DNA of 64,000 bases from Pocillopora damicornis (GCF_003704095.1 NW_020843990.1:1-64000), one strand, 5' to 3'. Counted from the first letter of the stretch, positions 1,026 to 54,700 are shown. Numbers and translations: made by a program. Notes: generated by a model from the sequence alone, not told the origin.

Positions 1026-1808
1026 ATGTCCAAATCCAAAGATGTTGCAAAGAGTTACCAGCATGTGTCGCTTTTTCAAAGAGAGGAAGGAAAAAAACTG
1101 ATCGACGATGTACAGATTTATCGCGGATATGTTATCCTAGATTTGGGCTGCGGTACTGGAGAATTGTCTGCGTATCTTTCCGAGCTCGCAGGACAAGATG
1201 GAAGAGTCGTTGCCGTCGATCCCGACAGTTATCGATTAGAAGTGGCGCGAGAATCACATAGGGAAGTCAAAAATCTCACATTTCAAGAAGGAAGCTCTGC
1301 CAGCTTCCCAGGAATGGGCTCGGAGACTTATGACATCGTCTTTGCCAACTTTGTGTTTCACTGGATTCAGGATAAAGAAGAAGTATTCAAGAACATGTTT
1401 CGGAGCCTGAAACCAGCAGGGAAAATTGCCGTGAGTTACGCCGACCGCTTAGCTTCCATCTTCAGTAAAATTTATCGTGAACTTCAAAGCTCAGAAAGCA
1501 TGGAACTTATGCTAAGCAAATGTTATTTCGAGAGAAGGTCAAAAATTGAGAGCATGTGTTTGGCTGCGGGATTCGAAATTGTAAAAAGTGTGGACGTCAG
1601 AATGGAGGATCTTGAGTTCGAAAATGTTGAAAGTATGTGCTCATTTTTCTCGGCAACCAATCAAGGCAGGTTTGTTTCAGAGCTAGCCACGAGAGATAAG
1701 GTGTCGAGTTTTTGTGCTCAGTACACAGGCGGGGAAAATTCTAAACCGTTGACGCTATATACTGATGAAGGAGATTATTACTGCGTACTGATTGCAGCCA
1801 AACCATAA
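1026..1808 (+). CDS. Class I SAM-dependent methyltransferase (Tam/JHAMT-like), copy 1, intact 260 aa
   Basis: Start MSKSKDVAKSY at ATG 1026, matching the paralogs. Motifs ILDLGCGTG, VVAVDPD, YDIVFANFVFHW and LKPAGKI are present. Single coding exon. Confidence 0.92.
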   Translation: MSKSKDVAKSYQHVSLFQREEGKKLIDDVQIYRGYVILDLGCGTGELSAYLSELAGQDGRVVAVDPDSYRLEVARESHREVKNLTFQEGSSASFPGMGSETYDIVFANFVFHWIQDKEEVFKNMFRSLKPAGKIAVSYADRLASIFSKIYRELQSSESMELMLSKCYFERRSKIESMCLAAGFEIVKSVDVRMEDLEFENVESMCSFFSATNQGRFVSELATRDKVSSFCAQYTGGENSKPLTLYTDEGDYYCVLIAAKP

Positions 1809-2930
1809 AGAAAGTGTCGGCCTTTTAGATTGTAATTAAAATTGCAATTAGAGAACGTTGTTTAAGTGTTCGGGTTCCATTCGAATCTGGAATATGTCGT
1901 TTTTAGCTTTAAATTTTGTAGTGTACTGAAACAAAACTTATTACCATTTCTTTTAAGTCTGCAGAGCACCAAGCAGATTGCGTGTTAACAACAAAACATT
2001 TTTGTTCGTGACGAAACCGCTTTGTAACGCTTAGAATCAGTTCAAGTAGTAAGCTTTGGTTTTGTTTTCCCTGAAAATAACTGATATGATCTCGATAGCA
2101 TTTATGACGCAGTAAATTGAACATTTTCCTCCGTTAGGTTAGTTGTTACAGCAGATAATATTTGCGTCACAGAATTTAAATTTAGTAATGTTGCGGTGTA
2201 GGTTATGGTTGATTGCGCAAAATGTTAGAGTACTTTTCAATCACGGTCAGTTGAAGTGGCGCTTTGTTTAGCAGGCTTCATTGTAAGGGAAGGGCGTGTT
2301 AATTTTTATTTTCTAAGGGGGTTTACACATTGATGGTCAGCGGTCTGTCGAGGAAGAAGATTCGTTTGCATTCTTCCACTCAATGTGATCGTTCAAGTCC
2401 TCACAAATAACTTCCGTGTTTTGAATTGCTCGGGCGAGGTTGGAGGACTTAACTAATTGCATGCTTTTATCTCTCCTTTTTGAATTAAAAAAAAAACTAC
2501 GCTTTACACTGTAATTTTTTTAACCTTAAGTAAAAGGAGGAGTTCCACATTTATCGTGAACTTGGAGCAAGGAATAATTACTCCTTCGAAAGCGTTCTCA
2601 TTCCGTGGCCGTTTCCTTGACAGTCATGCCCACAGTCAACAATAGTGCGTTCGCTCTTTCGCTCGCTTCCACCACCTGAGGGCCTGAGTCGGGCCTGATA
2701 CCTGACTTACTAGGGCTAGAAATCGCACAGAAGACTCCATTTCTTCTGTCATAGCATCGTGAAAATAGAAAATCCATTTTCAAACAAGTTAACGAAAAAT
2801 TCAGATTAGGAAAGAACTACTGACACCAAGAACCCTCTCAAATTAATAGCATTTGAGCAAGCCCTTATTATAAGGGGGTCCAATGCGCGAGCCTAACTTC
2901 GTCCTTGCATAAGTTAAGGGGCCTTGGAAA

Positions 2931-3011
2931 TAGCCTAAGTGAAGACGTACCCTTCCCCCCAAGGTTCTCGCCACCTTGGGAGGGGGGGAGGGTATGGCTA
3001 TACATAGGCTA
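2931..3011. mobile_element. Short palindromic MITE upstream of MT copy 2
   Basis: TAGCCTA...TAGGCTA ends with an imperfect duplication of the ccttgaaca target. Absent at the same site upstream of copies 1, 3, 4 and 5. Related inserts at ~13723-13795 and ~26160-26200. Confidence 0.6.
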
Positions 3012-3129
3012 TCTTGAACAACACAAGACGGCGAGAGGTCTTCGAGAGGTCTGGTACTAATTATTGGTGCCAGATCTTTTGCAGACCTCTCGCGGGATTC
3101 GATGGCCTAAACTAAAGCAAGTAATAAAA

Positions 3130-3911
3130 ATGTCTAAATCCAAAGATGTTGCAAAGAATTACCAGCAAGTGTCGCTTTTTCAAAGAGAGGAAGGGAAAAA
3201 ACTGATCGATGATCTAGAGATTCATCGCGGACATGTTATCCTAGATTTGGGCTGCGGCACTGGAGAATTGTCTGCGTATCTTTCCGAGCTCGTAGGACAA
3301 GATGGAAGAGTCGTTGCCGTCGATCCCGACAGTTATCGGGTAGAAGTGGCGCGAGAATCACACAGGCAAGTCAAAAATCTCGAATTTCATGAAGGAAGCT
3401 CTGCCAGCTTCCCAGGAGTGGGCTCGGAGACTTACGACGTCGTATTTTCCAACTTTGTGTTGCACTGGATTCAGGATAAAGAAGAAGCATTCAAGAACAT
3501 GTTTCGGAGCCTGAAACCAGCAGGGAAAATTGTCTTGACTTACTCCGATCACTCAGCTTCCATCTACCATAAAACTTATAGAGAACTTCAAAACTCAGAA
3601 AGCATGGAACGGTTGCTAAGCAAACTTTACTTCGAGAGAAAGTCAAATATTGAGGGCACGTGTTCGGCTGCGGGATTCGACATCGTGAAAAGTATCGACG
3701 TCAAGATGAAAGATTTTGAGTTCGAAAATGTTGAAAGTATGTGCTTATTTTTCTCGGCAAGTAATCAAGGCAGGTTTGTTTCAGAGCTAGCCACGAAAGA
3801 TAAGGTATCGAGGTTTTGTGCTAAGTACACAAGCGGGGAAACTCTAAACCGTTGACGGTTTATACTGATGAAGGAGATTATTATTGCGTATTGATTGCAG
3901 CCAAACCATAA
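3130..3911 (+). pseudogene. Methyltransferase copy 2, 1-nt deletion near the C-terminus (frameshifted allele or homopolymer error)
   Basis: 782 nt from ATG to the ancestral TAA at 3909-3911, versus 783 nt in paralogs. ggggaaactct versus ggggaaaactct at ~3838-3842 gives an early stop at 3855. Confidence 0.8.
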
Positions 3912-4357
3912 AGAAAGTGTCGGCCTTTTAGATTGTAATTAAAATTGCAATTAAAGAAGGTTGTTCAAGTGTTTGGGTTCTGGTCGAATCTGGAATGCGT
4001 CGTCTTCAATTTTAAATTTTGTCGTGTTAACAAAACTTAGTACCATTTCTTTTAATTCTGCAGAGCGCCGAGCAGATTGCGTGTCAACAGCAAAGTATTT
4101 TTGTTCCAGATGGAACTGCTTTGTATCGTTGAGAATCGGTCCAAGTTGTAAGCTTTGATTTTGCTTTCCCTGAAAACAACCGATGTGATCTCGGTACAAG
4201 CGTTTATGCCGCATGCAATTGAACATTTTCCTCTGTTAAGTTAGTTGTTACAGCAGACAACATTTTGTGTCACAGAGAGTTAATTTAGTCATGTTGCGGT
4301 GTAGGTTATGATTGATTGCGCAAAATGTCAGAAAACTTTTCAGCTAAGTTCAAGTTT

Positions 4358-4431
4358 GAAATTCTAAACCGTTGACGGCCTATACTGATAAAGGAGATTA
4401 TTACTGCGTATTGATTGCAGACAAACCGTAA
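4358..4431 (+). pseudogene. Orphan 3' fragment of a methyltransferase copy, followed by its 3' flank
   Basis: Encodes NSKPLTAYTDKGDYYCVLIADKP*, followed by the shared 3' flank to ~4770. No 5' part is present. Confidence 0.85.
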
Positions 4432-5054
4432 AGAAGGTGACGATCTTTTAGATTATAATGAAAATTGTAATTACGGAAGGTTGTTTAAGTATTCGGGTTC
4501 CAGTCGAATCTAGAATATGTCGTTTTTAACTTTAAACTTTGTAGTGTAAACAAGGCTTACTATCATATCTTTTGTGATGATGCGATCTCGGTAGCATTTA
4601 TGACGCAGGAAATTGAACATTTTCCTCTTTGAACCAAGTTCTTACAGCAAACAATATTTTGTGTCACAGAGTGTTAATTTAGTCACGTTGCGGTATAGGT
4701 CATGGTTGATTGCGCAAAATGTCGGAATACTTTTCAACTACTGCGCAGGCGGCTAACGCAGGGTTCTCACAGTCATATGAAGAGGGTCGTGGTTAAAAGG
4801 GATGACCCAAAAGGACCTCATTGGTTAAAAGAGATGGCCCAAAAGGACCTAAGCTAAGCAAGCCTTCGTTATAAGGGGGTCCAATGTACAAGCGCAACTT
4901 CGCCCTTGAATAAGTTTGGGGGCCTTGAACAAAACAAGACGGCGAGAGGTCTTCAGGTGGTCTGGCACTAATTACTGGTTACTGATCCCTTGCAGACATA
5001 TCACGGGCACGCTTTACCAAGATTCGGTCGCCTAAGCTTGAGCAATTAACAAAA

Positions 5055-5233
5055 ATGTCCAAATCCAAAGATGTTGCAAGCAAGTGTCGCTTTTTCAAAG
5101 AGAGGAAGGAAAAAAACTGATCGACGATGTAGAGATTCATCGCGGTCATGTTATCCTAGATTTGGGCTGTGGCACAGGAGAATTGTCTGCGTATCTGTCC
5201 GAGCTCGTCCGACAAGATGGAAGAGTCGTTGCC
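5055..5233 (+). pseudogene. Methyltransferase copy 3, 5' fragment
   Basis: ATG at 5055 and a 10-nt deletion after DVA. Homology ends at VVA (~5233), where unrelated sequence begins. Confidence 0.88.
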
Positions 5234-5784
5234 AAACTCTTTTACACTGGTACATTTCCTTACGCTTGCACGGCCTCTACAATACCTTCTTTTCTGCTTT
5301 TTATTCAAAACATTAATATAATGATTTATTTCTACTTGTGCGTCTTCAACAACAACGGCAGCAATCCATCGTTCTGTGAAGAACAGCTTTCCGCCACTGG
5401 AGCACGCAACGGCTTTGGTTGGATATCTTTCACGCATCGCTTGGTAGTTAACAAGTGAAAAAAAAACAGCAATAACAACCGTAGAAAAAACGCTCTATTT
5501 CCGGCTCGATTGATTCCTTGCGTAAATCACTCATACTGTGTGGAGTCCATCGTTTTCCTATCAACCACGCAATAAAAAAAGTAGAATTAATCCATTCTCC
5601 CAGAGGTCATTATTTGGCGACCATGCCGCTGACAAGGAGCCAAATTGACCCTGGCTTTGGGGTCTTGACAAAAGACAGCCAGAGGTCTTCAGGTGGTCTG
5701 GCACTATTTATTAGTGCCAGATCCCTTGCGGACGTCTCACAGGCACGCTTTACCCAGATTCGGTCGCTTGAGCAAGTGATCAGA

Positions 5785-6564
5785 ATGTCCAATTCCAAAC
5801 ATGTTGCAAAGAGTTATCAGCAATTGTCGCTTATTCAAAGAGAGCATGGAAAAAAACTGATCGACGATGTACAGATTCATCGCGGACAAGTTATCCTAGA
5901 TTTGGGCTGCGGCACTGGAGAATTGTCTGCGTATCTTTCCGAGCTCGTAGGACAAGATGGAAGAGTCGTTGCCGTTGATCCCGACAGTTATCGAGTAGAA
6001 GTGGCGCGAGAATCACATAGGGAAGTCAAAAATCTCGCATTTCATGAAGGAAGCTCTGCCAGCTTCCCAGGAATGGGCTCGGAGACTTACGACATGGTCT
6101 TCTCCAACTTTGTGTTGCACTGGATTCAGGATAAAGAAGAAGCTTTTAAGAACGTATTTCGGAGTCTGAAACCAGCAGGGAAAATTGTCGTGAGTTACGG
6201 CGATCGCTTACTTTCCATCATCGATAAAATTTATCGAGAACTTCAAAACTCAGAAAGCATGGAGCGTATGCTAAGCAAACTCTATTTCGAGAGAAGGTCA
6301 AAAATCGAAGAGATATGTTCGGCTGCGGGGTTCGAAATTGTAAAAAGTGTCGACGTCAAAATGGAGGATCTTGAGTTCGAAGATGTTGAAAGCCTGTGCT
6401 CAGTTATCTCGGCAACCAATCAAGGCAGGTTTGTTTCAGAGCTAGCCACGAGAGATAAGATATCGAGGTTTTGTGCCCAGTATACAAGCGGGGAAAATTC
6501 TAAACCGTTAACGTTTTTCATGGATGAAGATTATTTCTACGTGTTGATTGCATCCAAACCATAG
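5785..6564 (+). CDS. Methyltransferase copy 4, intact 259 aa
   Basis: MSNSKHVAKSY start, all motifs intact, one-codon deletion near the C-terminus. Confidence 0.92.
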   Translation: MSNSKHVAKSYQQLSLIQREHGKKLIDDVQIHRGQVILDLGCGTGELSAYLSELVGQDGRVVAVDPDSYRVEVARESHREVKNLAFHEGSSASFPGMGSETYDMVFSNFVLHWIQDKEEAFKNVFRSLKPAGKIVVSYGDRLLSIIDKIYRELQNSESMERMLSKLYFERRSKIEEICSAAGFEIVKSVDVKMEDLEFEDVESLCSVISATNQGRFVSELATRDKISRFCAQYTSGENSKPLTFFMDEDYFYVLIASKP

Positions 6565-8086
6565 AGAAGGAGACGGCCTTTTAGATTATAATTGAAATTG
6601 CAATTAGAAAAGGTTGTTTAAAATTTCAGTCCAATCTGGAATATGTCGTTTTTAACTTTAATTTTGTGGTGTAAACAAAACTTATTACCATTTCTTTTAA
6701 GTCTGCGGAGCGCTAAGCAGATTGCGTGTCAACAGCGAAGAATTTTTGTCCCTGATGGAACTGCTTTGTATCGATGAGGATCGGTTCAAGCAGTAAGCTT
6801 TGATTTTGCTTTCTCTGAAAACAACTGGTGCGATCTCGCTACTTGTAGGCAATTAAACGATGTCGTCAGTTTAGTTAGTTCTTACATCAGACAATATTTT
6901 TGTCACAGAGTGTTGATTTAGTCATGTTGCGGTGTAGGTTATGGTTGGTTGCGTGAAATGTCAGAGTACTTTTCAGCTACTGCGCAGGCGCGTAACACAA
7001 GGTTGTCACGGTCAGATGAAGTGGTAGTTCGTTTAGCAGGCTTCATTGTGGGGTAAGGGCGTGTTAATTATTATTTCTTAAGGGGGTAGGGGAGGGAGTT
7101 TGTTAACGAAATAACAGAAACGACCGTGTCAATAAAAGCAGTATATTTTGTGGCATATGCGTTTTTTCCCCTTTTAAATAATCAGTGCTTCTGTTGCAAC
7201 AGAACGTAGAAAAGGGAATTGGGCTAAAATTTTCTTCATTATGTATTGCTCCTTAAACCATTAGGAAATCTGTTTCATTTGCAAGATTGTGGAGACTTTT
7301 TGTTAATTATACATTTTGCTAATTCGATGTAATATTAATTACTCCTTAATTTGACTTCAATTGTTTATATTTATACGTATCTGCGTACATTCTAATTGTA
7401 CTATGTACCTTTATTCTGAAAGGAATAAAGTAAAGGAATAAATAAAGGAATAAATAAATATTTAATTTTTCCCAAAATTCTTTTGGGAAGAATTAAGTAT
7501 ACCTGTATGTATGTGCCGAGTCTTCCGCATGTTTTGTGAAGTTTAAATTATGATAAATTCTTTTCTTTGTTTTTGGGTTCCCTGTGCAGTAAGGTGGGTT
7601 AGGTTCATGTGAAAAATAATAATGGACAGCTGTTTTTCTTGGGAATTGTATATATTTTCTGTGCAGTGGCAAAGATGGTTGAACATACATATTATATGTA
7701 GTTTGTGAATAAAGATGGGTGTTGATTACATCAAATATAGAGAAAAAGCGACTAAATTTTTTTCCTGATTCGTCTTTTCCTTTGGTTACATGACGAGGGA
7801 CTAGTTTCCCTTTGCTGGTACTTTGCAGTATGCATTCTCCCTTCAACTTTTCTTTTCCGGAATAACGACGGTTTCCAGTTGAATCTACACACAGTAGTAT
7901 CTCACTGTCGTTTTATAAGGATTGTTTGTGGTTTTTTCTTTACTATCACATACGAATTGCCGGTCGGTCATGTTGTTCCGCTGATAGCAGACTAGGTAGA
8001 GAATTACAATAGCTTTTGTTGTACAAACGAAAATTAGGGCATAACAAATACAGCTGTTTCCAGAAAAGTTGTGTAATTCCGCCTCA

Positions 8087-8296
8087 TTAGCCCTTCACAC
8101 CCTAACATCAGTAAGCATATTCTCCATACTGTTCTATATACATTTCCTAAGGTGCTGACAAGGAGAATTTGTAAACTGATCAAAGCTTTTTTCGTTGGTG
8201 ATCATTTCCTTTATTCTCATGACCTTAATGTGTGATCCAGGGGTGATATTGTGTGGAGAAATTAGATGCTAGTCTCTCTTTGGATTAAAGGGTTAA
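8087..8296. mobile_element. piggyBac-like MITE (TTAA-CCCTT...AAAGGG-TTAA), abundant family
   Basis: ~210 bp with CCCTT/AAAGGG ends and TTAA-type flanks. Related copies at ~24142-24352, 45160-45484, 48048-48240, 52955-53164, 54531-54740, 56153-56345, 59447-59671 and 61680-61840. Confidence 0.72.
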
Positions 8297-9021
8297 GTCT
8301 CTTTATGAGAGACTAATTACCTGCCTTGCTGAGGAAGAGGGAAGAGAGCAAACAATAAACTTAGCGGAGCCGCCTAAAAACGATGCGGAAGAACCCGCGA
8401 AAAGAATTTTAACTGCTTATAGTCATACCCAAGAAATACGAATGATTTATTAAATCGCGTGGAAACACGAAAAAATGGAAACACTTTGCTATCCATTGTA
8501 TAAACTTTTATGAAGTTGGATTGTGATCACAGTCAATTTATCTGAATATCTGAATTTATCGTGAACTTGAAGCAAGGAATAATTACTCTTTCGAAAGTGT
8601 TGTCGTTCCGTGACGGTTTCCTTGACAATCATACCCACAGTAAACAATAGCACGGTCGCTCTTTTCCTCGCTTCCACCACTTGAGGGCCTGAGTCGGACC
8701 TGATACCTGATTTACTTGGGCAAGAAATCGCACAGAAGACTCTACTGCCTCTGTCATAGCATCGTGAATATAGAAAATACATTTTCAAACAAGTTAGCGA
8801 AAAATTCAGATTAGGGAAGAGCCGCTGCCACCAAAAACCCTCTCGAATTGATAGCCTTTGAGCAAGCCCTCATTGAATAACTTTAGGTGCCTTGAACAAC
8901 AGAAGACGGCGAGAGCTCTTTAGGTGGTCTGACAATATTTATTAGTGCCAGATCCCTTGAAGACCTCTCATAGGCACGCTTTACCAAGACTCAGTCGCGT
9001 AAACTTGAGGAGGTAACAAAA

Positions 9022-9804
9022 ATGTCCAAATCCAAAGATGTAGCAAAGAGTTACCAGCATGCGTCGCTTTTTCAAAGAGAGGAAGGAAAAAAACTGATCG
9101 ACGATGTACAGATTCATCGCGGACAAGTTATCCTAGATTTGGGCTGCGGCACTGGAGAATTGTCTGCGTATCTTTCCGAGCTCGTAGGACAAGATGGAAG
9201 AGTCGTTGCCGTTGATCCCGACAGTTATCGAGTAGAAGTGGCGCGAGAATCACATAGGGAAGTCAAAAATCTCACATTTCAAGAAGGAAGCTCTGCCAGC
9301 TTCCCAGGAATGGGCTCGGAGACTTACGACATCGTCTTCTCCAACTTTGTGTTGCACTGGATTGAAGATAAAGAAGAGGCATTCAAGAACATGTTTCGGA
9401 GCCTGAAACCAGCAGGGAAAATTGTCCTGACTTACGGCGATCGCTTAGCTTCCATCTTCCATAAAATTTATCGTGAACTTCAAAACTCAGAAAGCATGGA
9501 ACGTATGCTAAGCAAAGTCTATTGCGAGAGAAGGTCAAAAGTTGAGGGCATGTGTTCGGCTGCGAGATTCGAGATCGTGAAAAGCTTCGACGTCAAGATG
9601 AAAGATTTTGAGTTCGAAAATGTTGAAAGTATGTGCTCATTTATCGCAGCAACTCATCAAGGCAGGTTTGTTTCAGAGCTAGCCACGAGAGATAAGGTAT
9701 CGAGGTTTTGTGCTCAGTACACAAGCGGGGAAAACTCTAAACCGTTGACGTTATATGCTGATGAAGGAGATTATTACTCCGTATTGATTGCAGCCAAACC
9801 ATAA
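9022..9804 (+). CDS. Methyltransferase copy 5, intact 260 aa
   Basis: Complete ORF with all class I methyltransferase motifs. Confidence 0.93.
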   Translation: MSKSKDVAKSYQHASLFQREEGKKLIDDVQIHRGQVILDLGCGTGELSAYLSELVGQDGRVVAVDPDSYRVEVARESHREVKNLTFQEGSSASFPGMGSETYDIVFSNFVLHWIEDKEEAFKNMFRSLKPAGKIVLTYGDRLASIFHKIYRELQNSESMERMLSKVYCERRSKVEGMCSAARFEIVKSFDVKMKDFEFENVESMCSFIAATHQGRFVSELATRDKVSRFCAQYTSGENSKPLTLYADEGDYYSVLIAAKP

Positions 9805-10947
9805 AGAAAGCGTCGACCTTTTAGATTGTAATTGAAATTGCAATTAGAGAAGGTTGTTTAAGTATTTGGGTTCCATTCGAATCCGGAACTTGTCGTTTTT
9901 AACCTTAAAGTTTGTAGTTTCATAACGCTAAGCAGATTGCGTGTCAATAATAAAGAATTTTTGTCTCGGATGGAACCGCTTTGTATCGTTAAGAATCGGT
10001 TCAAGTAGTAAGCTTTGATTTTGCTTTCCCTGAAAACAACTGATGCGATCTCGGTGGCATTTGTGATTTAGTAACTTAAACGTTTTCCTCTGTTAACCTA
10101 GTTCATATTTGTGTCATATTTGTGTTAACCTAGTTCATATCTGTCACAGAGTGTTAATTAGGTCATGTTGTGGTGTAGGTTATGGTTGACTGCGCAAAAT
10201 GTCAGAGTACTTTTCAACAACTGCGCAGGCGGGTAACGCAGGGTTATTATGGTCAGATAAAATGTTGGTTTGTTTAGCAGGCTTCATAGTAAGGGAAGGG
10301 CGTGTTAATTTTAATTTCCTAAGGGGGTAGGGAAGGGAGGTTATTTGCGAAATAACAGAAATGACTATGTCAATAAAGGCAGCATATTTTGTAGCGTATG
10401 CGTTTTATTAGCGGGCATTTTTTTTTTAATAATCAGGGCTAAAATTTTTTTTCATTAATTTTGTTCATTAAATAATTAGGAGAGCTGTTTCATTTACAAT
10501 AATGCCTATAATTTTTATTAGTTATATATTTTGCTTATTCAATAAAACATTAATTACCTTTTTATTTGACTTCAAATTTTTTACTTTTTATATTTATGTA
10601 TTTACATTCTAACAGTACTATGTATCTTTCTTCTAAAAAGCCTTTTTGGGAAGAATTACGTGTACCTGTCTGTATGTGTCGTGTCTTTTCCGCGTGTTCT
10701 TAAGTTAAAATTATGATAATTTATTTTGTTTGTTTTTGGGCCCCCTTGTGCGGGTAGGTGGGTTAGGTTCATGTGAAATATAATAATCGACAGGTCTTTT
10801 TCTTGAGAATTGCATTTATTTTCTGTGCAGTGGCATAGATGGTTGAACATCATGTCAACACCAATCATTAGTGCCAAGTCCCTTGCGAATCTCACACGGG
10901 CACGCTTTACTACGATTCGGTCGCCTAAACTTGGGTAAGTAATCAAA

Positions 10948-23803: not shown

Positions 23804-24819
23804 TAAGGGCGCGTTAATTTTTATTTCCTAAGGGGGTGGGGTAAGATTGTTGTTTGCGAAATAACAGAAATTAACATGTCAATTAAGGCATCTTATTTTG
23901 TAGCGTCTGCGTTTCATTAGTGGGCTTTTTTTGTTTTAATAATCAGTGCTTCTGTTGCAACAGAACGTAGAAGAGGGAATTGGGCTAAGGAGACGAATGA
24001 GAGAATTAGGTTCGCTTTCGTTAAATAAAACATTCTGGGTGCGAGCCCTCTCCTGTTCGTGGCTGTGCCATGATGTATAAACGAAAATTAGGAGCATTAC
24101 AAATACAGCTGTTTCGAAAAAAGTTGTGTAATTCCGCCCCATTAACCCTTTACATTCTTACATCAGTACGCATATTCTCCATACTGTTCTTTATACATCA
24201 CCTAAGGTGCTGACAAGGAGAATTTGTTTACCGATCAAAAGCTTCTTTCCTTGGTGATCATTTCCTTTATTCTCATGACCTTAATGTGTGATCCAGGGGT
24301 GATATTGTAGGGAGAAATTGGTGCTAGTCACTCCTATGTTTTAAAGGGGTAATCCATCATATTAACTTTTTTACCCCAAGTTATGAAGTTGGGTTGTGAT
24401 CACAGTTAATTTATCAGAATATCTGCGTTGTTTTGGCCAATGGTCAAATGAATGGAAGCGTTACACTTATCTCGTGAACCTGGGAAAAAGAAAAATTGTA
24501 CTCTCCCGAAATCGTTGTCGTTCCGTGGCCGTTACCGTGACAAGTATACCCACAGTCAGCAGCCTAGTGCGATTCGTAGCATTTCAACATGGCTATTATG
24601 GCGTGACACTGTTTTTTCGTTTAATGCTCAAGAGTTATTTACACATTGGCGGTCAGCAGTCTGTCGAAGAAGAAGATTCGTTTGCATTCTTCCACTCAAT
24701 GCGATCGTTCAACTCCTCAGAAATAACTTCGGGCAAGGTTGGAGGACTTAACTAACTACATGCTTTTATCTCTCCTTTTTGAATTAAGAGAAACTAAGCT
24801 TTACACTGTAATTTTTACT

Positions 24820-25455
24820 GGGATACCTGTGGTAGCCTAGTCATAACACCCCTTTGTTTTTTTGTCGTCTTTTTTTTTCTCCGCCACAAAATGGAAAAAT
24901 TGCGCAATAGTACCCATTGATCATTGGGCCCTAAACACCATGACAACTAGCTGATCACATGTGTTATCTTGATGATGATTGACGTTGTCATGCACAGACA
25001 GGGCCGGGTCACATGACGAACCACGAGATTTTTGCTTAAAAAACTCTTTTCTTAGCCATTTTGTATTTGTCTTGGGGTAGTTGTCTTGGCGATGGAGGTG
25101 TCACGGTTTTGGTTTACGTTTACCTGGAGCTTTATGGTGCAAACGCTCAAAATACTTACAGATGCATACACAAGTCGTATTGTTCGCGGCCAATCCACAC
25201 TAAAAGATGTTATTGAGCGGTATTTTTGGAACGGATTGAGTCGCGAACGCTTGAAAGCCATGAAAGCCTTGTATGCCTTAAAAGCTATGAAAGCTTTGTA
25301 TGCCTTGTATGCCGAGTATGCCAAGGTCTTAGTTGAAAAACGTACACTTGTTGAAAAATGCAAAATCTTAAATCTGAAAGTAAACTGCATATACTCTATT
25401 GAATCTATTGAACAACACTACTACCGTGAGACTGAAGAACAAAACTCTAATGGAT
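24820..25455 (+). mobile_element. Probable 5' end of a DNA transposon with a short 9-bp-period tandem repeat
   Basis: Abrupt break from array homology at ~24820. ORF piece LKDVIERYFWNGLS resembles an N-terminal HTH of integrase-type transposases. Repeat (ttgtatgcc/atgaaagcc)n at 25250-25322. Confidence 0.35.
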
Positions 25456-25555
25456 NNNNNNNNNNNNNNNNNNNNNNNNNNNNNNNNNNNNNNNNNNNNN
25501 NNNNNNNNNNNNNNNNNNNNNNNNNNNNNNNNNNNNNNNNNNNNNNNNNNNNNNN

Positions 25556-26048
25556 TGCTTAGCATACGTTCCATGCTTTCTGAGTTTTGAAGTTCACGAT
25601 AAATTTTATCGACGAAGGAAGGTAAGCGATCCCCGTAAGACAGGACAATTTTCCCTGCTGGTTTCAGGCTCCGAAACATGTTTTTGAATGCTTCTTCTTT
25701 ATCCTGAATCCAGTGAAACACAAAGTTGGAAAAGACGATGTCGTAAGTTTCCAAGCTCATTCCTGGGAAGCTGGCAGAGCTTCCTTCTTGAAATTCGAGA
25801 TTTTTGACTTCCCTGTGTGATTCTCGCGCCACTTCTACTCGATAACTGTCGGGATCAACGGCAACGACTCTTCCATCTTCAAATACGAGCTCGGAAAGAT
25901 ACGCAGACAATTCTCCAGTGCCGCAGCCCAAATCTAGGATAACATGTCCGCGATGAATCTCTACATCATCGATCAGTTTTTTTCCATGCTCTCTTTGAAA
26001 AAGCGACACATGCTGGTAACTCTTTGCAACATCTTTGGATTTAGACAT
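25556..26048 (-). CDS. Methyltransferase copy 10, inverted, 3' end in assembly gap
   Basis: MSKSKDVAKSYQHVSLFQREHG...SESMERMLS is open up to the gap. Upstream 26049-26600 is an inverted paralog of 2520-3129. Confidence 0.88.
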
Positions 26049-26715
26049 TTTGATTACTTGCTGAAGTTTAGGCCACCGAATCCCGCGAGAGGTCTGCAAG
26101 GGATCTGGCACCAATAATTAGTGCCAGACCACCCGAAGACCTCTCGCCGTCTTTTGTTGTCCTATGTGTAGCCGTACCCTCTCTCGCCACACGAAGGCTA
26201 TGTTTAGGGCCTCTAAACGTATGCAAGGGCGAAGTTACCCTCGTACATTGGACCCCCTTATTATGAGGGCTTGCTCAAATGCTATCAATTTGAGAGGGTT
26301 TTTGGCTTCAGTAGTTCTTTCTTAATCTGAACTTTTCATTAACTTGTTTGAAAATATATTTTCTATATTCACAATGCTATGACAGAGGTAACAGAGTCTT
26401 CTGTGCTTTTTTAGTCCCAGTAAATCAGGTATCAGGTCCGACTCAGGCCCTCAGGTGGTGGAAGCGAGCGAAAGAGCGAACTCACTATTGATGATTGTCA
26501 AGGAAACTGCCACGGAACGAGAATACTTTCGAAAGAGTAATTATTCCTTGCTCTAAGTTCACGATAAATGTGGAACTCCTCCCTTCACTTAGGTCAAAAA
26601 AATTACAACGTAAATTTTTGGTGCGTAGAAAGAGACAATACGTTTAATATTTGCTTGCAACTCATCGTCACGATTGGCTCAAACAGGGCTGATATCCCGA
26701 CATATTAATTGTAAA

Positions 26716-26832
26716 ACCGCGGACCACGGAATCCGAAGGTCTGAGGTTCGATTCTTCATGGGAACTCGGATGTTTTTCTTTTTCTTTTCCTTTGTCCTAC
26801 GCTCGTGACAAGACTAAAAACATCTTTCTCTA
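26716..26832 (+). mobile_element. tRNA-derived SINE fragment
   Basis: B-box-like ggtctgaggttcgattc followed by ttgtcctacgctcgtgacaagactaaaaacatctttctc. No full cloverleaf. Confidence 0.6.
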
Positions 26833-27602
26833 TTCTATATACAAACAATTGATAATAATTGACGAGCTCATCTCCATAATTTCGCTATATCTACAGCTCC
26901 CCTCCATTAAGAAAGCATTAGCATGGAACGCATGCAAGAGTTATTTTTTTGGGGGCTGTTTGGGGAGGGACACTCTTTATAACTGATGTTTTCATTTTTG
27001 TAACATTATAAGAGCGTAACGGAAAATCTGACTACGAAAATATCTCATTACTTTATCTTAAAGAGAAAGAAAAAAGATCTGATTTATCTGCGTGGATAAA
27101 TATTGTTCCGTAACGAGATAACGTCATCTGACCGCAATAACAATTACCTTGCGTTACCCGCCTGCGCAGTAGTTGAAAAGTATTCTAACATTTTGCAAAT
27201 TCAACCATAACTTTATTCATATGCATATGACCAAATTTACACAGTCTTTGACACGAAATGTCGCCCACTGGAAGGACTAGGTTAACTGAAGAAAATCAAT
27301 TTCTGGCTTCATAAATGTTACCGAGATTACATGCGTTGTTTTCGGGGAAACAAATTCATAACTTCACGCATTCAAAACAAAAACGGCTACATTGATGCCG
27401 ATTCTCATCGCTTCACTGGCATTGTTTTTAATCAGGGACATAGTGCTTTACTGTTTCCACACAGCAAACTAAATGGTCATTTCGTTTACATAACAAACGT
27501 TCCGGCCATAAACGATATATTACGAATTCCACAGGAACTCGAGTACGCAACCAAGCTTCTCTGATGCAAATCTAACAATAATCTAAAAGGCCGTCACGTT
27601 CT

Positions 27603-28385
27603 TTATGATTTGGCTGCTATCAATATACAGTAGTAATCTTCTTCATCAGTATACAGTTTTAGCGGTGTAGAATTTATCCCACTTGTGTACTGAGCACAAA
27701 AACTCGATAATTTGTCTTTCGTGACGAGCTTTGGATCAAACGCATCTTGCAAATATACCGAGTAAAATGAGCACATACTTTCAACATTTTCGAACTCAAA
27801 ATCTTTCATCTTGACGTCGAAACTTTTAACGATGTCGAATCCCGCAGCCGAACACATGCCCTCAATTTTTTACCTTCTCTCGAAATAAAGTTTGCTTAGC
27901 ATGAGTTCCATCATTTCTGAGTTTTGAAGTCCACGATAAATTTTTTGAAATCCAGAAATAAAGTGATCGCCGTAAGACAGGGCAATTTTCCCCGCTGGTT
28001 TTAGGCTCCGAAACATGTTCTTGAACGCTTCTTCTTTATCCTGGATACGTTGAAACACAGAGTTAGCGAAGACGATGTCGTTAGTCTCTGAACCCATTCT
28101 TGGGAAGTTTGAAGAACTTCCCTCATGAAATGCGAGATTTTTTACATCCCCGTGTGATTCTTGAGCCACTTGAAGCCGATTGACATCAGGATCAACGGCA
28201 ACGACTCGTCCATCTTGACCTACGAGCTCGGCCAAATACGCAGACAATTCTCCAGTACCGCAGCCCAAATCTAAGATGACATCTCCGCGATGAATCTCTA
28301 CATCGTTCATCAGACTTTTTCCTATCTCTCTTTGACGTACCGTCTTTTCTTGGTAACTCTGTGCTGCTTGCTTGGAGTCCGACAT
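27603..28385 (-). pseudogene. Methyltransferase copy 11, most divergent, in-frame TAA
   Basis: 783 nt like intact copies, with TCA(Ser)->TAA at 27870-27872. YD->ND and HW->QR changes in conserved motifs. Confidence 0.85.
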
Positions 28386-31422: not shown

Positions 31423-34400
31423 TTAATCATCTGTCTCTTTAAGTTCACATACAGTGTCACATACGGGGTCTTTAACAACGTTTTCAAGGACGGGGTCTGA
31501 CAGAAAGTCGTCAAGAGAAAGAGATGTACATGTACTGTCGACGTCTTCAAACAACGGCAAACGATACGTCACGGCAGGTGCATGTTCTGGCTTAGAAATG
31601 TCATTTATTTCGCTTGCAGTGCTGCTCTCTTGTGTTGCAAGCTCACCTGAACTTTTGTTTACATTCTCGGGATCAAGGTTTGCATGCACTGTGCTTTCAA
31701 CCACAATAGTAGCACCATCGTCTCCCGACGTTATGACTGAAGAGGCACCGCCCAGCCGAGCTGTCTTCATATTGGCGATTTCTGATCTGAGCTGGGACAG
31801 TAAGGTTGTGGCTCTTTCACCCAAGCTTGAAACGCTCTCATGGAACACGGAGCTGCTTGTAACGATGGCATCTTCTTCATCATCACCCGGTTTTCCGCGA
31901 TTAGACTTTGCCAAAGGCAAACTACCTTCTGCTCCTCTTAAAGACTTCACCTCATTTTTATGGAGTTCTTCATGCATATCTCTCTCCTTCTTGAAGGATG
32001 TGTCGTCTCTAGTTTTATCACTACCTGCATCACCTCCGGAAAGTTTCTGATCTAAATTCTTCACATGGAACGAGCTCGAGAACTTCCAGGCTAAATCGGT
32101 GTAAGAATAGTTTTCAGCTGTGCCTTTCCTCTCGTTTTGGTTCCTGTGAACTTCCTTCTGGACATTGCTTGTGTCCCCCTCGTCACTATCTTCATCATCA
32201 GTTGGAATTGGACTACTAACAATTATTTCCGGTATGCTGGCTTGTAAACTCTTTCCTTCAGATGCTCCCCAGTTCAGGTCCTTTTCTGTTGAATCAGATT
32301 CTTGAGAATCCACAAGCGAGCAAAGAACACGTGGAGCCGTATTCTCCATCACTTGACCTGTTTCAACGTGAGGTTTCGAGGTGACTTTCTCAGAAAGAGG
32401 CTCATTTTGGTCAAGGGAGGAAGGAGATCTCCTTTCCTCGAAAAGTTCTCCTACACCGCGTGCAACATCATTATTTCTCTCCGTTTCAAGATCTAAAGGT
32501 CCTTGGGGTGCTTCCTCAGTATCGTTCTCGCTATGTTTCGTTTCAGGAAGGGACAATTGTTTCTCCTCCATTCCCGGTGCGGCTGATGACAATCTGGTTT
32601 CCCCTTCAAAACTATTCGATGAATTCGCGATATTCAGTCCGGAGTCCTTTTGATCACACTTTGTAAGAGCTAATCGGAAAGCGTCCTGATCCATTCTGCC
32701 TGCAAGTGGAGCTTCTTTGTTTAATTCAAGATCTGATAGAACCGAATCGTCTGTGAACAATAATTTGCCTCCAGACTCTAGTTCACCTGACACGGGAATA
32801 TTTTCATCACAATTTTTCAGCTCTCCTTTTTCGTCTCGTTCCTCAACTAGCGAGCGTTCAGGGGACGGGCCTGAGGTAGCATCGGAATGCTGAACAGGAG
32901 GCGATAACGTAGGATCCTCGGCGAACTTTGTTTCTACGCTCTCCTTTGATGTGTCGAATGTGTCGTAGAACTGATCCTGTCCTTCTGAATCCGTCTTTTC
33001 AGCTTCGTGTTGAGGTTCGTTGTCTTGGATTTTACCTGCAATGAATAGTCAGCGATTGTTGAGAACCAATATGGCAGGTGTAGATAAAAAGCTTCAAGCT
33101 TTGCAAACTTTTTATTGTTCCAGCGCCTTTAATTCTGTCGTCAACACCAATACCCAAAGTAACAGTAACGTCCAATCAGAGTACAGACCACCATAAACCG
33201 CGTTTAGCGCGGGAAAACGCAGGTGACCAAGACGCGATTGGTTTTGGTTTTGCATCTGATTGGTTGAGAAGGTGGTGTGAGTTTTCTGATCCTGTCACAG
33301 AACGTTGTGCGTTTTAACCCTAAATAAATTCTGGGTAAAATCATATTTTCAAAATCACGCTTTCAAAATTTCACCCTCCCGAACTTAACATTAACTGGAT
33401 GTATTTTGAAACGAGAGTCCGAATCCTCAAAAGACTCTGCAAAATTTTCAGGTTTTCCATAAAAAGCAGTAATTGCGTCCACTACTTACCAAATGACAAT
33501 AAGTTTTTTTCAATATCTCGAATCAGTAGAACATTGACATTCCAGCCAAAAGTAACGGGCATTAAACAACACAGCATTGAAATCAAGTTACCTTTAGTGA
33601 GATCATTTATCTGGGATGTGACAACATTCAACTAAAAACAAAGAAAAGAATACGAGAGTCACATACATCACAAACTTGACCTGTTAACGCCTTTACCCTA
33701 CAACCGCACATTTTGATTCAAAATTTATCCTTTATTAGTATTGAGACTACTCTTTGCTTAATGTTAAAATGATCTCAAGAAACAAGATTATCAGGGAGAG
33801 AGAGACCTAAAATAGGTTTTTGAGCGAGGACATAAAGAAGCGTTCATCACCTGTGTCTGTAGCTGGCGACACATTGCAAAGAGCATTGCAACTTGATCCT
33901 GGTTCATTCTCTTGCCGGGAAACAGCTAAACCATACGGAATAAAAACACTTTTACTGTTGGTCGATGGTCTTGAGCATTTTTCATACGTTTTTTTTTTCG
34001 ATTAAACTTCCCTAGCAGGCGTTTAAATTAACCCTGTGCGGATAATTTAGGACGGCACACGCAAGAGAGGGGATACGAATGCGAGAGAGTCATACGGAGT
34101 GTCTCTACAGCGTGGTTGTTCTCTCGCACGAGTTTTGACCGCGTTTTTACGAGTGCTTTTAGGACTGGCTGTGAACGATACTTCTTGTCAGTCAATGACA
34201 TATAATATATGTTAATTTTTCGAGCTTAGTGATGTATTGTAAGTTACAAATAGGTTGTAGGATAATAAAGCAACTTAATGGAAAAAATGTTTATTTACCT
34301 TTCTGGCCATACATCCTCTCCTAAAATTAACAGAACAAAAATCAAACCAAGGAAATTGAGAACGAAATTGACATATTTTACAACATATCGTGGGACAAAA

Positions 34401-51700: not shown

Positions 51701-54700
51701 TGTGCAAAGGGGAAATACTTTTTTTACGAATGTTGATAACCTTTTCAACTGGATAGTGTTTCATCGGTTTTGTCCGCACAGAGTCGCCGAAATTTCGGCC
51801 AGAGAATTAGTTCTAATCCTTGAAAGAGAAAGAAAGTTGGCTATACAAAGATGACTCACCTTGAGAGACTGCAGTTTCAACATTCTGCCCACTTCTTGTA
51901 CACAAACGTCTTTAAAATTTTATCTTTTACAATCATTTGATTCTAACCTGTCCTCCCACTCTCATCTCCCCTTCTAACACATGATCTGATTCAGCAAATC
52001 CTGCTTCTAGGTCTCCTTTCTGAATGCACATCGGTTCAGGGTTCAAATATGACTCCGCAGCTATAGCTTCCTGTCCACAAATAGAACAGATGCTTAAGTT
52101 TGTAGCTCTTCACTAAAAGTAAACTGTGAGTCTGGAGGCAATGGAAACTCTTAAATCAGCCTGCAGGAAAGGCGGCATTTTCTTTTGCGTTTCCAGGCCA
52201 ACGGAGGCGCGGTGAACGCCAGACAAGCTCGAGGAAGGCATGGGGCGAGCGCAAACAGGGAGACACGAACGAGGGGAGCGGCGCGAAATATCCCCTCCTC
52301 TCAAACGTGACTCGCCTTTAGCATATTCCTCGCGTTCGCAAAAAAAAAAAAAGCCTCCATTTGCATCAGAAATGTAAAAACCATGTAAAAGTGAACATTT
52401 TACCTCAATGGTTATTATTCTGGGAAGGTCCTCATAGGTGACCTTCACCAGCTGGGCTGCTTTTTGGGCCTGGGCCTGAGTTTCAGCGACAATGCCACCT
52501 ATTACCTGACCCACGCATGTCACCTATAGTAGAAAAAAAGGATAAATTTATGCAGAGGGAAGGGGTTAGTGCAGTCAAGTGCAAACTTTTTAAGTTAGAA
52601 ATCTTGTGTTGTTTCTGCCTTAATTAAGGGTCAAATGAAACAAAAGCAGGATTCCACAGCTCTACGATTGAGCTTTGTATCAAATACCATGATTTGGAGA
52701 AGAAAATAAGACGGGAATTGTCACGCTGCATTCCACTTAATCTACCAGTTTAACGTCAACGGCATTTTTCTATTCACCTGCGAGCTAATACTCTTTTCAA
52801 ATAAAACACAATGGCTTCAAGATTAAAGTAACCTTCCAAGGCGCCTGTCAATGACACGCAAAATCTAGAGGTTTAGAAATCAAACTGGCTCACGATTGTG
52901 AAACAAAACAAAATGGATCGAAATCCTTCAACAACAACTCAAAAAATGACCTTATAACCCTCCAATCCCACAGTGTGACTAACATCTAGTTTCTCCTTAC
53001 AGTATCATCCCTGAATCAAACATTCAAGTCATGAGAGTAAAGGAAATGATCGCCAACTTGAGAAGCTCTGATTGTTTGACAAATTCTCCTTGTTAATAAT
53101 ATGATAAATGCGAAGAGGAAAGTTTGGAGAATATGCATACTGATGTTAAGGTGTAAAGGGTTAAATCCTCGAACACTCCACATTTTTACCGTGAGGTGTA
53201 CGACATAACTGACAGCCGCGCGACACGGAACTTCGATGATGCATTTCCAGCTTTGAAACTCACTTGCAACTCGCGTGTTTGTAGTTCACGTATAATTTTC
53301 GAGTTGTTGCAAAATACAAATCACATCACACATCAAAAAGATAAAGAAAAAAAGGTACCTTTTCTGAGGCGAAGATCTCCTCGTCAAAGATTACAGGCCC
53401 TGTCGCGTTGCGACCTGGTACATCATCCACACCAACATATCTTTTAACCCCTGGTTGACGAAGTGCTTCACTTGGATCAACACCCCTGAAAATATCCAAA
53501 AACTACAAAGTTAATATCTTATGTATCAGAGTGCCCCCTTTGTTATTTTAAATAAAGCTCTGGGAAGCAATAAACATGTTCCTTTTCCTTACAGTTGAGA
53601 GACATACTGTGAGAGTAGAGTATTTTACCCTTGAACACAATCCAATAACATGGCCAGGTCTGGAACCCAGACCTCTCGACCCAGATCCCATCGCACTGAC
53701 CATAAGGTCCACGCGTCTCCGCCCCGTAATAGAAAGCAGGCAGCACCACAGTTTCTTTGGAAACTTCTTGCTAAAGAGCTTTTTTTTTTTTTTAAAGTTT
53801 TGGGTGGAGAGTTTGGCACGACCTAATTGTTTGGTTTAAAACGAGCGCGTGACGCGAATAAAGTGCGATTCTTTTTCTCTTGTAAGAGAGAAACTGGTCT
53901 TGCTTGTTAGTAAAGTTCTCTCTCCTGAAACTGCCGTAGTTTCGACTCGAAGCCAAGGATGCCTGATGAAATGCTAGGAGGGTAACGTTATAGTGGACTT
54001 GCATCGCATCCAGGGGGGGAATTAGTGATACTCCTAGTCGCTGCACGCTAAAGGAACCTGGAGAAGCACTTTACTAGATGGGCCGCTTAGCTCAAGTCCT
54101 TTTTTTCCAGACAGTATCAAAGCTTTATTTAAAAGAAAACAAACAATTTTCTTACAGGATTTTCGCATGTGCACGCTTGCTGAAGACGACACCCAAGTAA
54201 AGTTCTCCTTGAAAGGGAAAAATACAGCAATTTAGCTTTAAATCAACCTTAACTTGAAGTTTGAGACATTAATTCTTTGGATTAGAAATGTTGTTTTTTT
54301 TTCGCACGGTACCTTCAGTAAATTCATCTTTATCAAAGTAAAATAACTACGCAATCCTTAAATGAACGATTGATCCTTTTTTCTCACGATGTAAGAGTCA
54401 GGCTGAACGATATAATCGTGCAATCAATACACGATTGAAGAGCCAAACTCTTTCATTGTGAAACAAACGATTAAACGTTCAGCTATCTATCGAACCACGC
54501 TGAATAACAACATTTTTCTATAACCTATGTAATCCTTTAACTCCCAAGATCTGATGGTTAATTCCCCCCTCTAGCTGCTACACACTTCCTTTTCAATAAG
54601 TTAAGAGAGTTTGGTGTTAGATCAAGATAAAAACTTCTTCCTGATAAGTTTGAGTGTTCTCATTACCTGTTTGCTGGATAATGCATGGATGTTGTTGGGA

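Follow-up and report, generated by a model that had tools for sequence, protein, structure and literature searches.

A tandem array of single-exon methyltransferase genes in the coral Pocillopora damicornis, with birth-and-death evolution, gene conversion and a variable loop near the putative substrate pocket

The pocilloporid coral Pocillopora has about ten single-exon genes arranged head to tail in a genuine tandem array, which in Pocillopora damicornis lies at positions 1026 to 28385 of the 64,000 nt stretch of DNA analysed (GCF_003704095.1, NW_020843990.1:1-64000; the window). With moderate confidence, the array is read here as a set of class I SAM small-molecule methyltransferases that evolve by gene conversion and birth-and-death, with putative carboxyl O-methylation as their chemistry and pocket tuning under weak diversifying selection at a few codons. 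The tandem, intronless, birth-and-death family of the original prediction was borne out by pseudogenes and remnants as well as by lesions confined to particular lineages. Every motif and variable string that the prediction cites is present in the sequence, and the site said to carry five residues (codons TTC/TAC/ATC/GAA/GTC) is codon 146.

By tblastn of the window and a whole-genome search, 12 pieces were recognised, which amount to about eight gene-length loci and three small remnants. Five of the loci are intact single-exon class I SAM methyltransferase genes of 259-260 aa; the others are a frameshifted copy (1 bp), a pseudogene, and a gap-split gene. The intact genes, all on the plus strand, are designated c1 (1026..1808, 260 aa, found as an ORF and by tblastn), c5 (5785..6564, 259 aa), c6 (9022..9804, 260 aa, the reference copy), c7 (10948..11730, 260 aa), and c8 (17530..18309, 259 aa). 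The DNA of c1 is 99% identical to that of its ortholog on the long-read contig described below. Copy c2 (3130..3911, plus strand) is full-length, but loss of one base pair at CDS nt 710 (codon 237) leads to a premature stop. The long-read contig and the Tara scaffolds carry an intact c2, and the deletion is either a true allele or an assembly error. The remnants, also on the plus strand, are the C-terminal 23 codons of a copy at 4360..4428 (tblastn), common to the long-read and Tara loci, the N-terminal 63 codons at 5045..5233 (tblastn), kept in related loci, and the 5' flank with the first codons of a copy at 13796..13938, found by blastn of the repeat unit. A LINE-like retrotransposon with RVT_1 at 19150..21489 on the minus strand is broken by assembly gaps; it occupies the same place on the long-read contig, where Exo_endo_phos was seen too. 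Copy c10 is split into its 3' end (last 40 codons, 22708..22831, of which the searches matched 22708-22828, plus strand), beginning at gap 22608-22707, and its 5' part (N-terminal 164 codons, 25556..26048, minus strand), cut by gap 25456-25555. Copy c11 (27606..28385, minus strand) is an older paralog with 72% identity, an in-frame TAA at codon 172, and Gln-Arg in place of the His-Trp discussed below.

The same array was found on an independent, gap-free long-read contig of 1.06 Mb (ctg66866_91x_l), collinear and 97-99% identical, and on Tara Pacific metagenome scaffolds with two to five adjacent copies each. No intact gene of the window is spanned by a run of N. The gaps at 20591-22205 fall inside the LINE-like reverse-transcriptase region, and ORFs read through N (20269-20715, 21127-21489, and 25368-26114) were rejected as not valid. 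Comparison with the long-read contig shows two pieces of the window, 1-20590 and 22708-25455, to be inverted with respect to the pieces next to them. One intact long-read gene matches both the fragment at 22708 and that at 26048 (99.2-99.8%); given the flip, the two annotated 'fragments' are therefore a single gene, c10, a practical result for this scaffold. Since the long-read contig orders and orients the pieces between the 100-N gaps differently, continuity across those gaps is unsupported. Such mis-orientation, and a contig that begins within the locus, would suit an assembly artefact in which the copies are stacked haplotypes or collapsed or expanded repeats, but the order of paralogs, remnants, and LINE insertion is identical on the gap-free long-read contig and several Tara scaffolds, and dS is 0.1-0.25 between paralogs versus 0.00-0.10 between orthologs. 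Mis-stacking of haplotypes, a danger named in the original prediction, was rejected because the long-read contig has the array and so do the Tara scaffolds; the artefact explanation is extremely improbable and effectively refuted. Bacterial contamination or recent horizontal transfer was likewise rejected, as the best prokaryotic match is 32% identical, a LINE lies in the array, and polyA-library contigs cover it.

The array is expressed, with at least three copies under contigs from RNA runs. These RNA-derived contigs come from four studies, namely one confirmed polyA library and three runs that are probably RNA; they are collinear on c5, c6, and c7, and no splice joints within the CDS were found in them for these three copies. 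On c5 they cover the CDS and run on for about 1.2 kb into the 3' UTR, and between genes they leave 8350-8949 and 10550-10949 empty.

Pfam profiles Methyltransf_31 (the top hit), 11, 25, and 12 all scored over their cut-offs. Motif I LDLGCGTG (GxGxG after beta1) and the acidic D65 at the end of beta2 are invariant across 60 family members. The AF2 model of c6 (pLDDT 93.5, pTM 0.90) has the seven-stranded alpha/beta fold, and Foldseek returned at least 500 methyltransferase matches (best E = 3e-17), including 3ccf, an uncharacterised Anabaena methyltransferase, and JHAMT 7ec0, with TM of about 0.7. The best structural match is 3ccf, which has the LHW motif in common with the coral proteins. In phmmer, the catalytic pair His115-Trp116 of silkworm JHAMT (7ebs), directly after beta4, is matched position by position by coral H112-W113; His112 is present in 59 of 60 family members and Trp113 in 56 of 60, with the c11 lineage as the exception. 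The catalytic Gln of the N-terminal helix in JHAMT is Gln14/15, and alignment ranges (query 8 to chain 5) place Q18, kept in 58 of 60 members, opposite Gln15. A PDB search with the N-terminal helix alone gave no usable match, and in a search with residues 1-118 JHAMT was not among the matches listed. Judged from these alignments and the conservation, the JHAMT-type His-Trp is kept and the JHAMT-type Gln is probably kept.

Full-length NCBIfam matches were obtained to two carboxyl O-methyltransferases, BioC (TIGR02072; residues 8-239, 85.5 bits, under the equivalog cut-off of 184.95) and Tam, trans-aconitate 2-methyltransferase (NF002463; residues 22-222, 55.4 bits, under the equivalog cut-off of 297). 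The coral enzymes would be expected to O-methylate carboxyl groups, putatively of small hydrophobic acids. A different chemistry, with methyl transfer to N (as in PEAMT), S (as in thiol methyltransferases), or arsenic (as in ArsM), is an unlikely alternative for which several matches speak: plant PEAMTs (N-methyltransferases) are the best PDB sequence matches (E = 1e-17, SAM domain only), arsenite methyltransferases score too, the thiol methyltransferases TmtA and GtmA are among the Foldseek matches (TM about 0.72), and a Stylophora homolog is labelled 'arsenite methyltransferase' in a published table. The PEAMT, arsenite, and thiol methyltransferase matches are, however, confined to the SAM-binding half (residues 20-141), those of PEAMT stopping at residue 137-141 with no similarity over the substrate-binding part, whereas BioC, Tam, JHAMT, and 3ccf match over the full length, and 56-59 of 60 members have the His-Trp by which JHAMT anchors the carboxylate.

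JHAMT has the same fold and the His-Trp after beta4, and probably a counterpart of the N-terminal-helix Gln conserved in the coral family, but only about 20% sequence identity; the likeness described here is one of fold and residues, and the coral genes differ in having no introns. BioC and Tam are the best full-length profile matches, although the coral scores are far under the family cut-offs (85 vs 185 and 55 vs 297, respectively). The closest prokaryotic homologs are 30-37% identical; unlike the bacterial enzymes, the coral genes belong to an animal genome that has LINE elements and yields polyA-library contigs, and they form a tandem array, not an operon. Among plant SABATH enzymes, carboxyl methyltransferases have expanded in tandem in particular lineages, and a few residues of the pocket determine which substrate is preferred, but SABATH is a separate methyltransferase family without detectable sequence relationship, and the comparison is an analogy only. 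JHAMT genes, too, have often been duplicated within single genera, with catalytic residues lost in some paralogs (PMC10015273, PMC8526772). The original prediction knew of no characterisation of such a system in this kind of animal, which is slightly overstated, as the supplement of Noel et al. 2023 (Genome Biol 24:123) already lists orthogroup OG0000235, which may include these genes and is described as a JHAMT-like SAM-dependent methyltransferase (IPR025714, Methyltransf_31); it is significantly amplified in corals relative to sea anemones, and 80-96% of its members are in tandem. Its description fits the coral array in top Pfam hit and tandem layout, but it is a bare table row that offers no analysis of gene structure, selection, gene conversion, or catalytic residues; methyltransferases are not mentioned in the main text of Noel et al. 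2023, only in its supplement, nor in PMC13044578. As a duplicated enzyme family, the coral array is a good, if fairly ordinary, example.

The copies fall into nine orthogroups, all with bootstrap support of 100%, which arose before the sampled Pocillopora lineages diverged and after the split from Stylophora. They evolve by birth and death, with frameshift, stops, deletions, and remnants, and by frequent short gene conversion among paralogs. Lesions were found in c2, c11, c1 alleles, and one c7 allele; eight orthogroups keep intact ORFs across lineages, and dN/dS of orthologs is 0.17-0.66. Recombination was detected by the PHI test (p < 0.001), and AICc gains in breakpoint analysis are consistent with recombination among copies. 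The 'frozen SAM core' noticed earlier is indeed near-identical, but third codon positions are frozen likewise: they diverge by 0.05 in codons 31-60 and 121-150, compared with 0.15-0.22 in the other codons and in the flanks, which indicates homogenisation by gene conversion as much as protein constraint. The SAM-binding half is homogenised by conversion even at silent sites, and conversion also carries the variable beta5-alpha6 'cassette' between paralogs; the cassette of c12 was found within the c6 ortholog of the long-read contig. Apparent fast evolution of that c6 ortholog (20 replacements) was rejected, as 25 of 28 differences are states present in other paralogs and are due to gene conversion. 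Much apparent repeated substitution is accounted for by cassette exchange among paralogs.

In JHAMT, the pocket is formed by the helix after beta5, the following loop, and a C-terminal loop (pocket residues from PMC8526772). The original prediction placed the variable segments in the substrate cap, and three of four do fall on JHAMT pocket elements, i.e., the N-terminal helix next to the catalytic Gln, the beta5-alpha6 region, and the loop that follows alpha7. The remaining segment (codons 206-212) maps approximately to the end of helix 201-211, just before an alpha9-alpha10-like loop. Distances of variable sites to the active site were taken by homology, with an uncertainty of about two residues. 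Codons 139-148 (in c6 9436..9465, plus strand, at the beta5-alpha6 junction) align with the pocket helix alpha-6 of JHAMT. They are the only segment with omega above 1 (about 2), and the equivalent codons behave alike in every copy.

Selection was analysed with a codon-model likelihood written for this work, whose M0 lnL of -3602.36 equals that of IQ-TREE. For the whole gene, M0 omega is 0.50. The site models proposed in the original prediction favour positive selection, with 2dlnL of 25.1 for M1a vs M2a and 29.6 for M7 vs M8; the use of four partition trees gives 2dlnL of 19.0 (p = 7e-5), and with nine representatives p is 0.0019 with a single tree and 0.035 with partition trees, the most conservative design. 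Likelihood-ratio tests of this kind are inflated by recombination. In a tree-free test, omega above 1 in codons 139-148 was not significant against neutrality (p = 0.07-0.15). Two sites were rejected as selected: site 126, with recurrent CpG transitions (CGG to TGG or CAG) common to paralogs, and site 85, whose support was gone with partition trees. In codons 131-150, nonsynonymous to synonymous changes are 24.5:4.5 (Fisher test vs the rest p = 0.0028, scan-corrected 0.012), and codons 121-150 are the sole window of codons with first and second positions more diverged than third (0.132 vs 0.056). Of the hypervariable segments originally proposed, codons 139-148 thus stand out significantly from the rest of the gene, but the other three (N-terminal, 164-170, and 206-222) have omega of 0.4-0.7, which relaxed constraint fits.

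A possible, though less probable, explanation is that redundant duplicates drift under relaxed constraint, with conversion shuffling variants, without adaptive change of specificity, and with the loop as the least constrained surface. About 40% of sites belong to a class with omega = 1, which therefore points to redundancy relaxing constraint broadly, and the gene-wide omega, the three segments just named, the lack of significance against neutrality in codons 139-148, the fall to p = 0.035, the lesions named above, and the hypervariability of the same positions across the whole family all agree with drift. Against it, 55-60% of sites have omega = 0.08, eight orthogroups are intact across lineages with constrained orthologs, and the replacement excess is clustered, in the only codon window where first and second positions outrun third, on the homolog of a pocket helix. 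We see some evidence for adaptive change, in one short loop only, near the likely substrate pocket. In the favoured reading of pocket tuning, codons 139, 147, and 244 may be under weak diversifying selection, most other variable positions would be merely weakly constrained, and residues 139-148, the 165-168 loop, and residue 244 are predicted to tune the fit of the acid.

A survey of sesquiterpenoid pathway genes that included P. damicornis and S. pistillata reported cnidarian genes for the mevalonate and isoprenylation steps and for ALDHIII, and its conclusion was that in cnidarians the pathway has no JHAMT step and goes no further than farnesoic acid (PMC9181382). It is a rather remote prospect that the array is a coral toolkit for varied methyl esters of small signalling or defensive acids, with specificities of the beta5-alpha6 cassette made by diversifying selection and spread by conversion; methyl farnesoate and oxylipin or fatty-acid esters are possible products. 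If true, a methyl farnesoate product would overturn the conclusion that cnidarians make no sesquiterpenoid beyond farnesoic acid. The locus is a compact natural case of gene conversion homogenising the cofactor-binding half of an enzyme and transplanting a putative specificity loop between paralogs. If the copies truly differ in substrate, corals would have a small, fast-evolving set of carboxyl methyltransferases, which would matter for the chemical ecology of corals and for the question whether cnidarians produce methylated signals of sesquiterpenoid or lipid type.

Twelve methyltransferase-like pieces are present within 1026-28385 of the window, as located by ORF listing and by tblastn with the copy at 9022-9801 as query. 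Five of them (c1, c5, c6, c7, and c8, starting at 1026, 5785, 9022, 10948, and 17530, respectively) each consist of one intact ORF of 259-260 codons. Copy c2, starting at 3130, is full length but lacks 1 bp at CDS nt 710, and c11 (28385-27606, minus strand), an older copy, has 72% identity and an in-frame TAA. An N-terminal piece of 164 codons (26048-25556, minus strand) and a C-terminal piece of 40 codons (22708-22828, plus strand) each abut a 100-N gap, and short remnants at 4360, 5045, and 13796 were found by tblastn or repeat-unit search. All strings quoted in the original prediction were found in the sequence, including the five codons at position 146 (numbering here follows c6). The closest named proteins to the array product are from Stylophora pistillata and Pocillopora damicornis. 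A LINE-like element with RVT_1 is coded at 19150-21489 (minus strand), with an Exo_endo_phos endonuclease in a related contig. The array is flanked by an acidic, Ser-rich ORF of 456 aa (31423-32793, minus strand) without a Pfam match but 98% conserved in the long-read contig.

No N run is crossed by an intact gene, and the gaps at 20591-22205 fall inside the LINE-like element. The window contig begins inside the array locus, and its pieces between gaps are 1-20590, 20691-22607, 22708-25455, and 25556 onward. A 47-kb stretch of the gap-free 1.06-Mb contig ERZ25067899 ctg66866_91x_l, from an independent long-read assembly of a close relative, was compared for order and identity only, and matches the window at 97-99.8% identity. 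Along this stretch, the 456-aa flanking gene comes first, followed by c11 and by a single intact gene, c10. This gene aligns with window 26048-25556 at 99.8% and with window 22708-25455 at 99.2%, so the two gap-bounded pieces are halves of c10. Window 20691-22607 follows in reverse, then window 1-20590 with c1, c2, two remnants, c5, c6, c7, c8, and the LINE; beyond the LINE come more remnants and c12, a further full copy. Every copy in this contig is on the same strand, and by this order and strand, window pieces 1-20590 and 22708-25455 are flipped relative to it, probably because scaffolding misoriented them at the 100-N gaps. Stacked haplotypes as the source of the copies were rejected, because the long-read contig is collinear and Tara Pacific metagenome scaffolds carry 2-5 adjacent copies ordered as in the array. 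The LINE-like insertion downstream of c8 is at the same site in both assemblies and is therefore older than their divergence.

The array appears to be transcribed. Four studies (a confirmed polyA metatranscriptome plus three runs that are probably RNA) supply contigs, unable to rank expression between copies, that are collinear with three units: c5 with about 1.2 kb downstream, c6 with about 0.7 kb downstream, and c7. The contigs do not cover 8350-8949 and 10550-10949, and no splice joint was found in the coding regions of c5, c6, and c7. A whole-genome search (234.35 Mb, 4393 contigs) revealed distant paralogs elsewhere, each matching as a single block, so the whole family is intronless. Single-exon paralogs of 45-48% identity are on contigs C1208, C1129, C109, and C573, and broken family pieces of 84-92% identity with three stops are at C1457:254296-255456. 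A short repeat between c5 and c6 (7950-8349), with similar copies at 24071-24352, 45157-45305, and 52955-53164, reaches about 7,000-30,000 in summed contig depth, with many loose ends, in all four runs; the repeat is probably a dispersed element, SINE-like or similar, that is transcribed at a high level.

Pfam Methyltransf_31, 11, 25, and 12 all matched above cut-off. The AlphaFold model (pLDDT 93.5) has class I topology and, following the strand 128-138, a helical insertion. Foldseek matches were 3ccf, 4VPMT2, JHAMT 7ec0 (TM 0.70), TmtA/GtmA, and Tam-like enzymes, all small-molecule methyltransferases. The best full-length profile matches, both far below family cut-offs, were BioC and Tam, which are carboxyl O-methyltransferases. 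In juvenile hormone acid methyltransferase (JHAMT), Gln15 and His115 are catalytic, and the pocket is lined by Trp116, helix alpha6 (142-151), alpha7/loop B (167-175), and the alpha9-alpha10 loop (PMC8526772). In phmmer alignments, coral H112-W113 are opposite His115-Trp116 of silkworm JHAMT2, and G139 and L142 are opposite its pocket residues Leu142 and Met145; by alignment ranges only, Q18 would be the equivalent of the catalytic Gln. Among 60 family members with identity down to 44%, 58 retain Q18, 59 retain H112, and 56 retain W113. Six to eight or more different residues occur at each of positions 139, 143-148, 166, 168, and 244. Carboxyl O-methylation is most likely the chemistry of the array enzymes. 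Farnesoic acid, fatty acids, and oxylipins as candidate substrates are our guesses.

Recombination screening, proposed with the original prediction, revealed pervasive recombination (PHI p < 0.001), and adding breakpoints around nt 180, 330-360, and 540 brought large gains in AICc. The SAM core had been described as frozen, and its low divergence is real, but the silent sites are frozen as well. Divergence at third positions is 0.05 within codons 31-60 and 121-150, compared with 0.15-0.22 for distal coding sequence and 0.13-0.23 for flanking DNA, so at the level of DNA the core has been homogenised. Only in the codon block 121-150 does divergence at first and second positions (0.132) exceed that at third positions (0.056). 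Nt 381-470 of the long-read c6 are 97.8% identical to c12 and 92.2% identical to c6 of the window, and represent a concrete conversion event. The c6 ortholog pair differs at 28 positions, 25 of which are states found in other paralogs.

Pairwise dN/dS is 0.36-0.72 between window paralogs and 0.17-0.66 between orthologs of the window and the long-read contig, with no silent differences in the c2 pair. Site models were computed in our own codon-model code, with M0 likelihood identical to that of IQ-TREE, and refitted with partition trees because of the pervasive recombination. With 23 sequences and a single tree, 2dlnL was 29.6 for M7 vs. M8, the comparison originally suggested, and 25.1 for M1a vs. 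M2a; four partition trees reduced the latter to 19.0 (p = 7e-5). With nine representatives, M1a vs. M2a gave p = 0.0019 on a single tree and p = 0.035 on four partition trees. Single-tree classes were 4-6% of sites with omega of about 3.5-3.9, 58-61% with omega 0.08, and about 38-39% neutral. Sites 139, 147, and 244 are the recurrent candidates. Site 85 lost support once partition trees were used. At codon 126 (9397-9399 in c6), CGG to TGG and CGG to CAG recur in several orthogroups; recurrent CpG transitions are the better explanation for this site, and CpG hypermutability here imitates positive selection in the site models.

In a tree-free check based on minimum mutation counts per codon column, omega was about 0.54 overall and about 2.1 in codons 131-150 (N:S 24.5:4.5). 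This stretch differs from the remaining gene (Fisher p = 0.0028, scan-corrected 0.012); against neutrality it is not significant in the tree-free check (p = 0.15; codons 139-148, p = 0.065). The predicted adaptive diversification of the hypervariable segments may hold in part: omega of about 2.1 is restricted to codons 131-150, whereas the N-terminal helix, 164-170, and 206-222 have omega of 0.4-0.7 and look weakly constrained. The data are suggestive of adaptive diversification confined to a few beta5-alpha6 codons and residue 244. The array is real and mostly constrained.

A tree of 27 unique sequences has nine orthogroups, each with 100% support. In the protein tree, Stylophora-type sequences are outside the c1-c12 clade and c11 is outside both, so the expansion, or its homogenisation, is Pocillopora-specific. 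In place of the catalytic His-Trp found in every other family member, the c11 lineage carries Gln-Arg, even in intact ORFs, and is reminiscent of inactive silkworm JHAMT isoforms. Its ORF is intact in one Tara scaffold (L033:940-1722; protein cluster of 169 sequences) and pseudogenised in the window genome and the long-read contig. The c11 copy may be a non-catalytic paralog. In some Pocillopora lineages c1 alleles have a stop at codon 15 (L025:470, L028:625), and in one a c7-like copy (L022:10149-10737) has an internal deletion of about codons 68-127, so the presence or absence of functional copies varies between lineages. In a language-model atlas search, the nearest clusters beyond Cnidaria were bacterial; the best bacterial homolog, from a Verrucomicrobium species, is 32% identical over residues 3-218, and insect JHAMT is lower, about 20%. 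Bacterial similarity and the absence of introns suggest, as a lead, that the anthozoan family may have an ancient bacterial origin.

No characterisation of such a system in this kind of animal had been known to the original prediction, but the JHAMT-like orthogroup OG0000235 (IPR025714) is already listed as amplified in corals relative to sea anemones (adjusted p = 6e-8), and 80-96% of its members are arranged in tandem (Noel et al. 2023). It is not discussed in the main text of that paper or in another coral gene-family paper (PMC13044578). According to a survey of sesquiterpenoid genes, the cnidarian pathway stops at farnesoic acid, without the JHAMT step (PMC9181382). JHAMT duplications are common in arthropods (PMC10015273), and with the OG0000235 listing this means that the array is not new in kind. 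The Pocillopora array is thus a fuller description of a system of known kind, one that is shaped by birth-and-death dynamics, and in which gene conversion homogenises the cofactor half and moves the putative specificity loop between paralogs.
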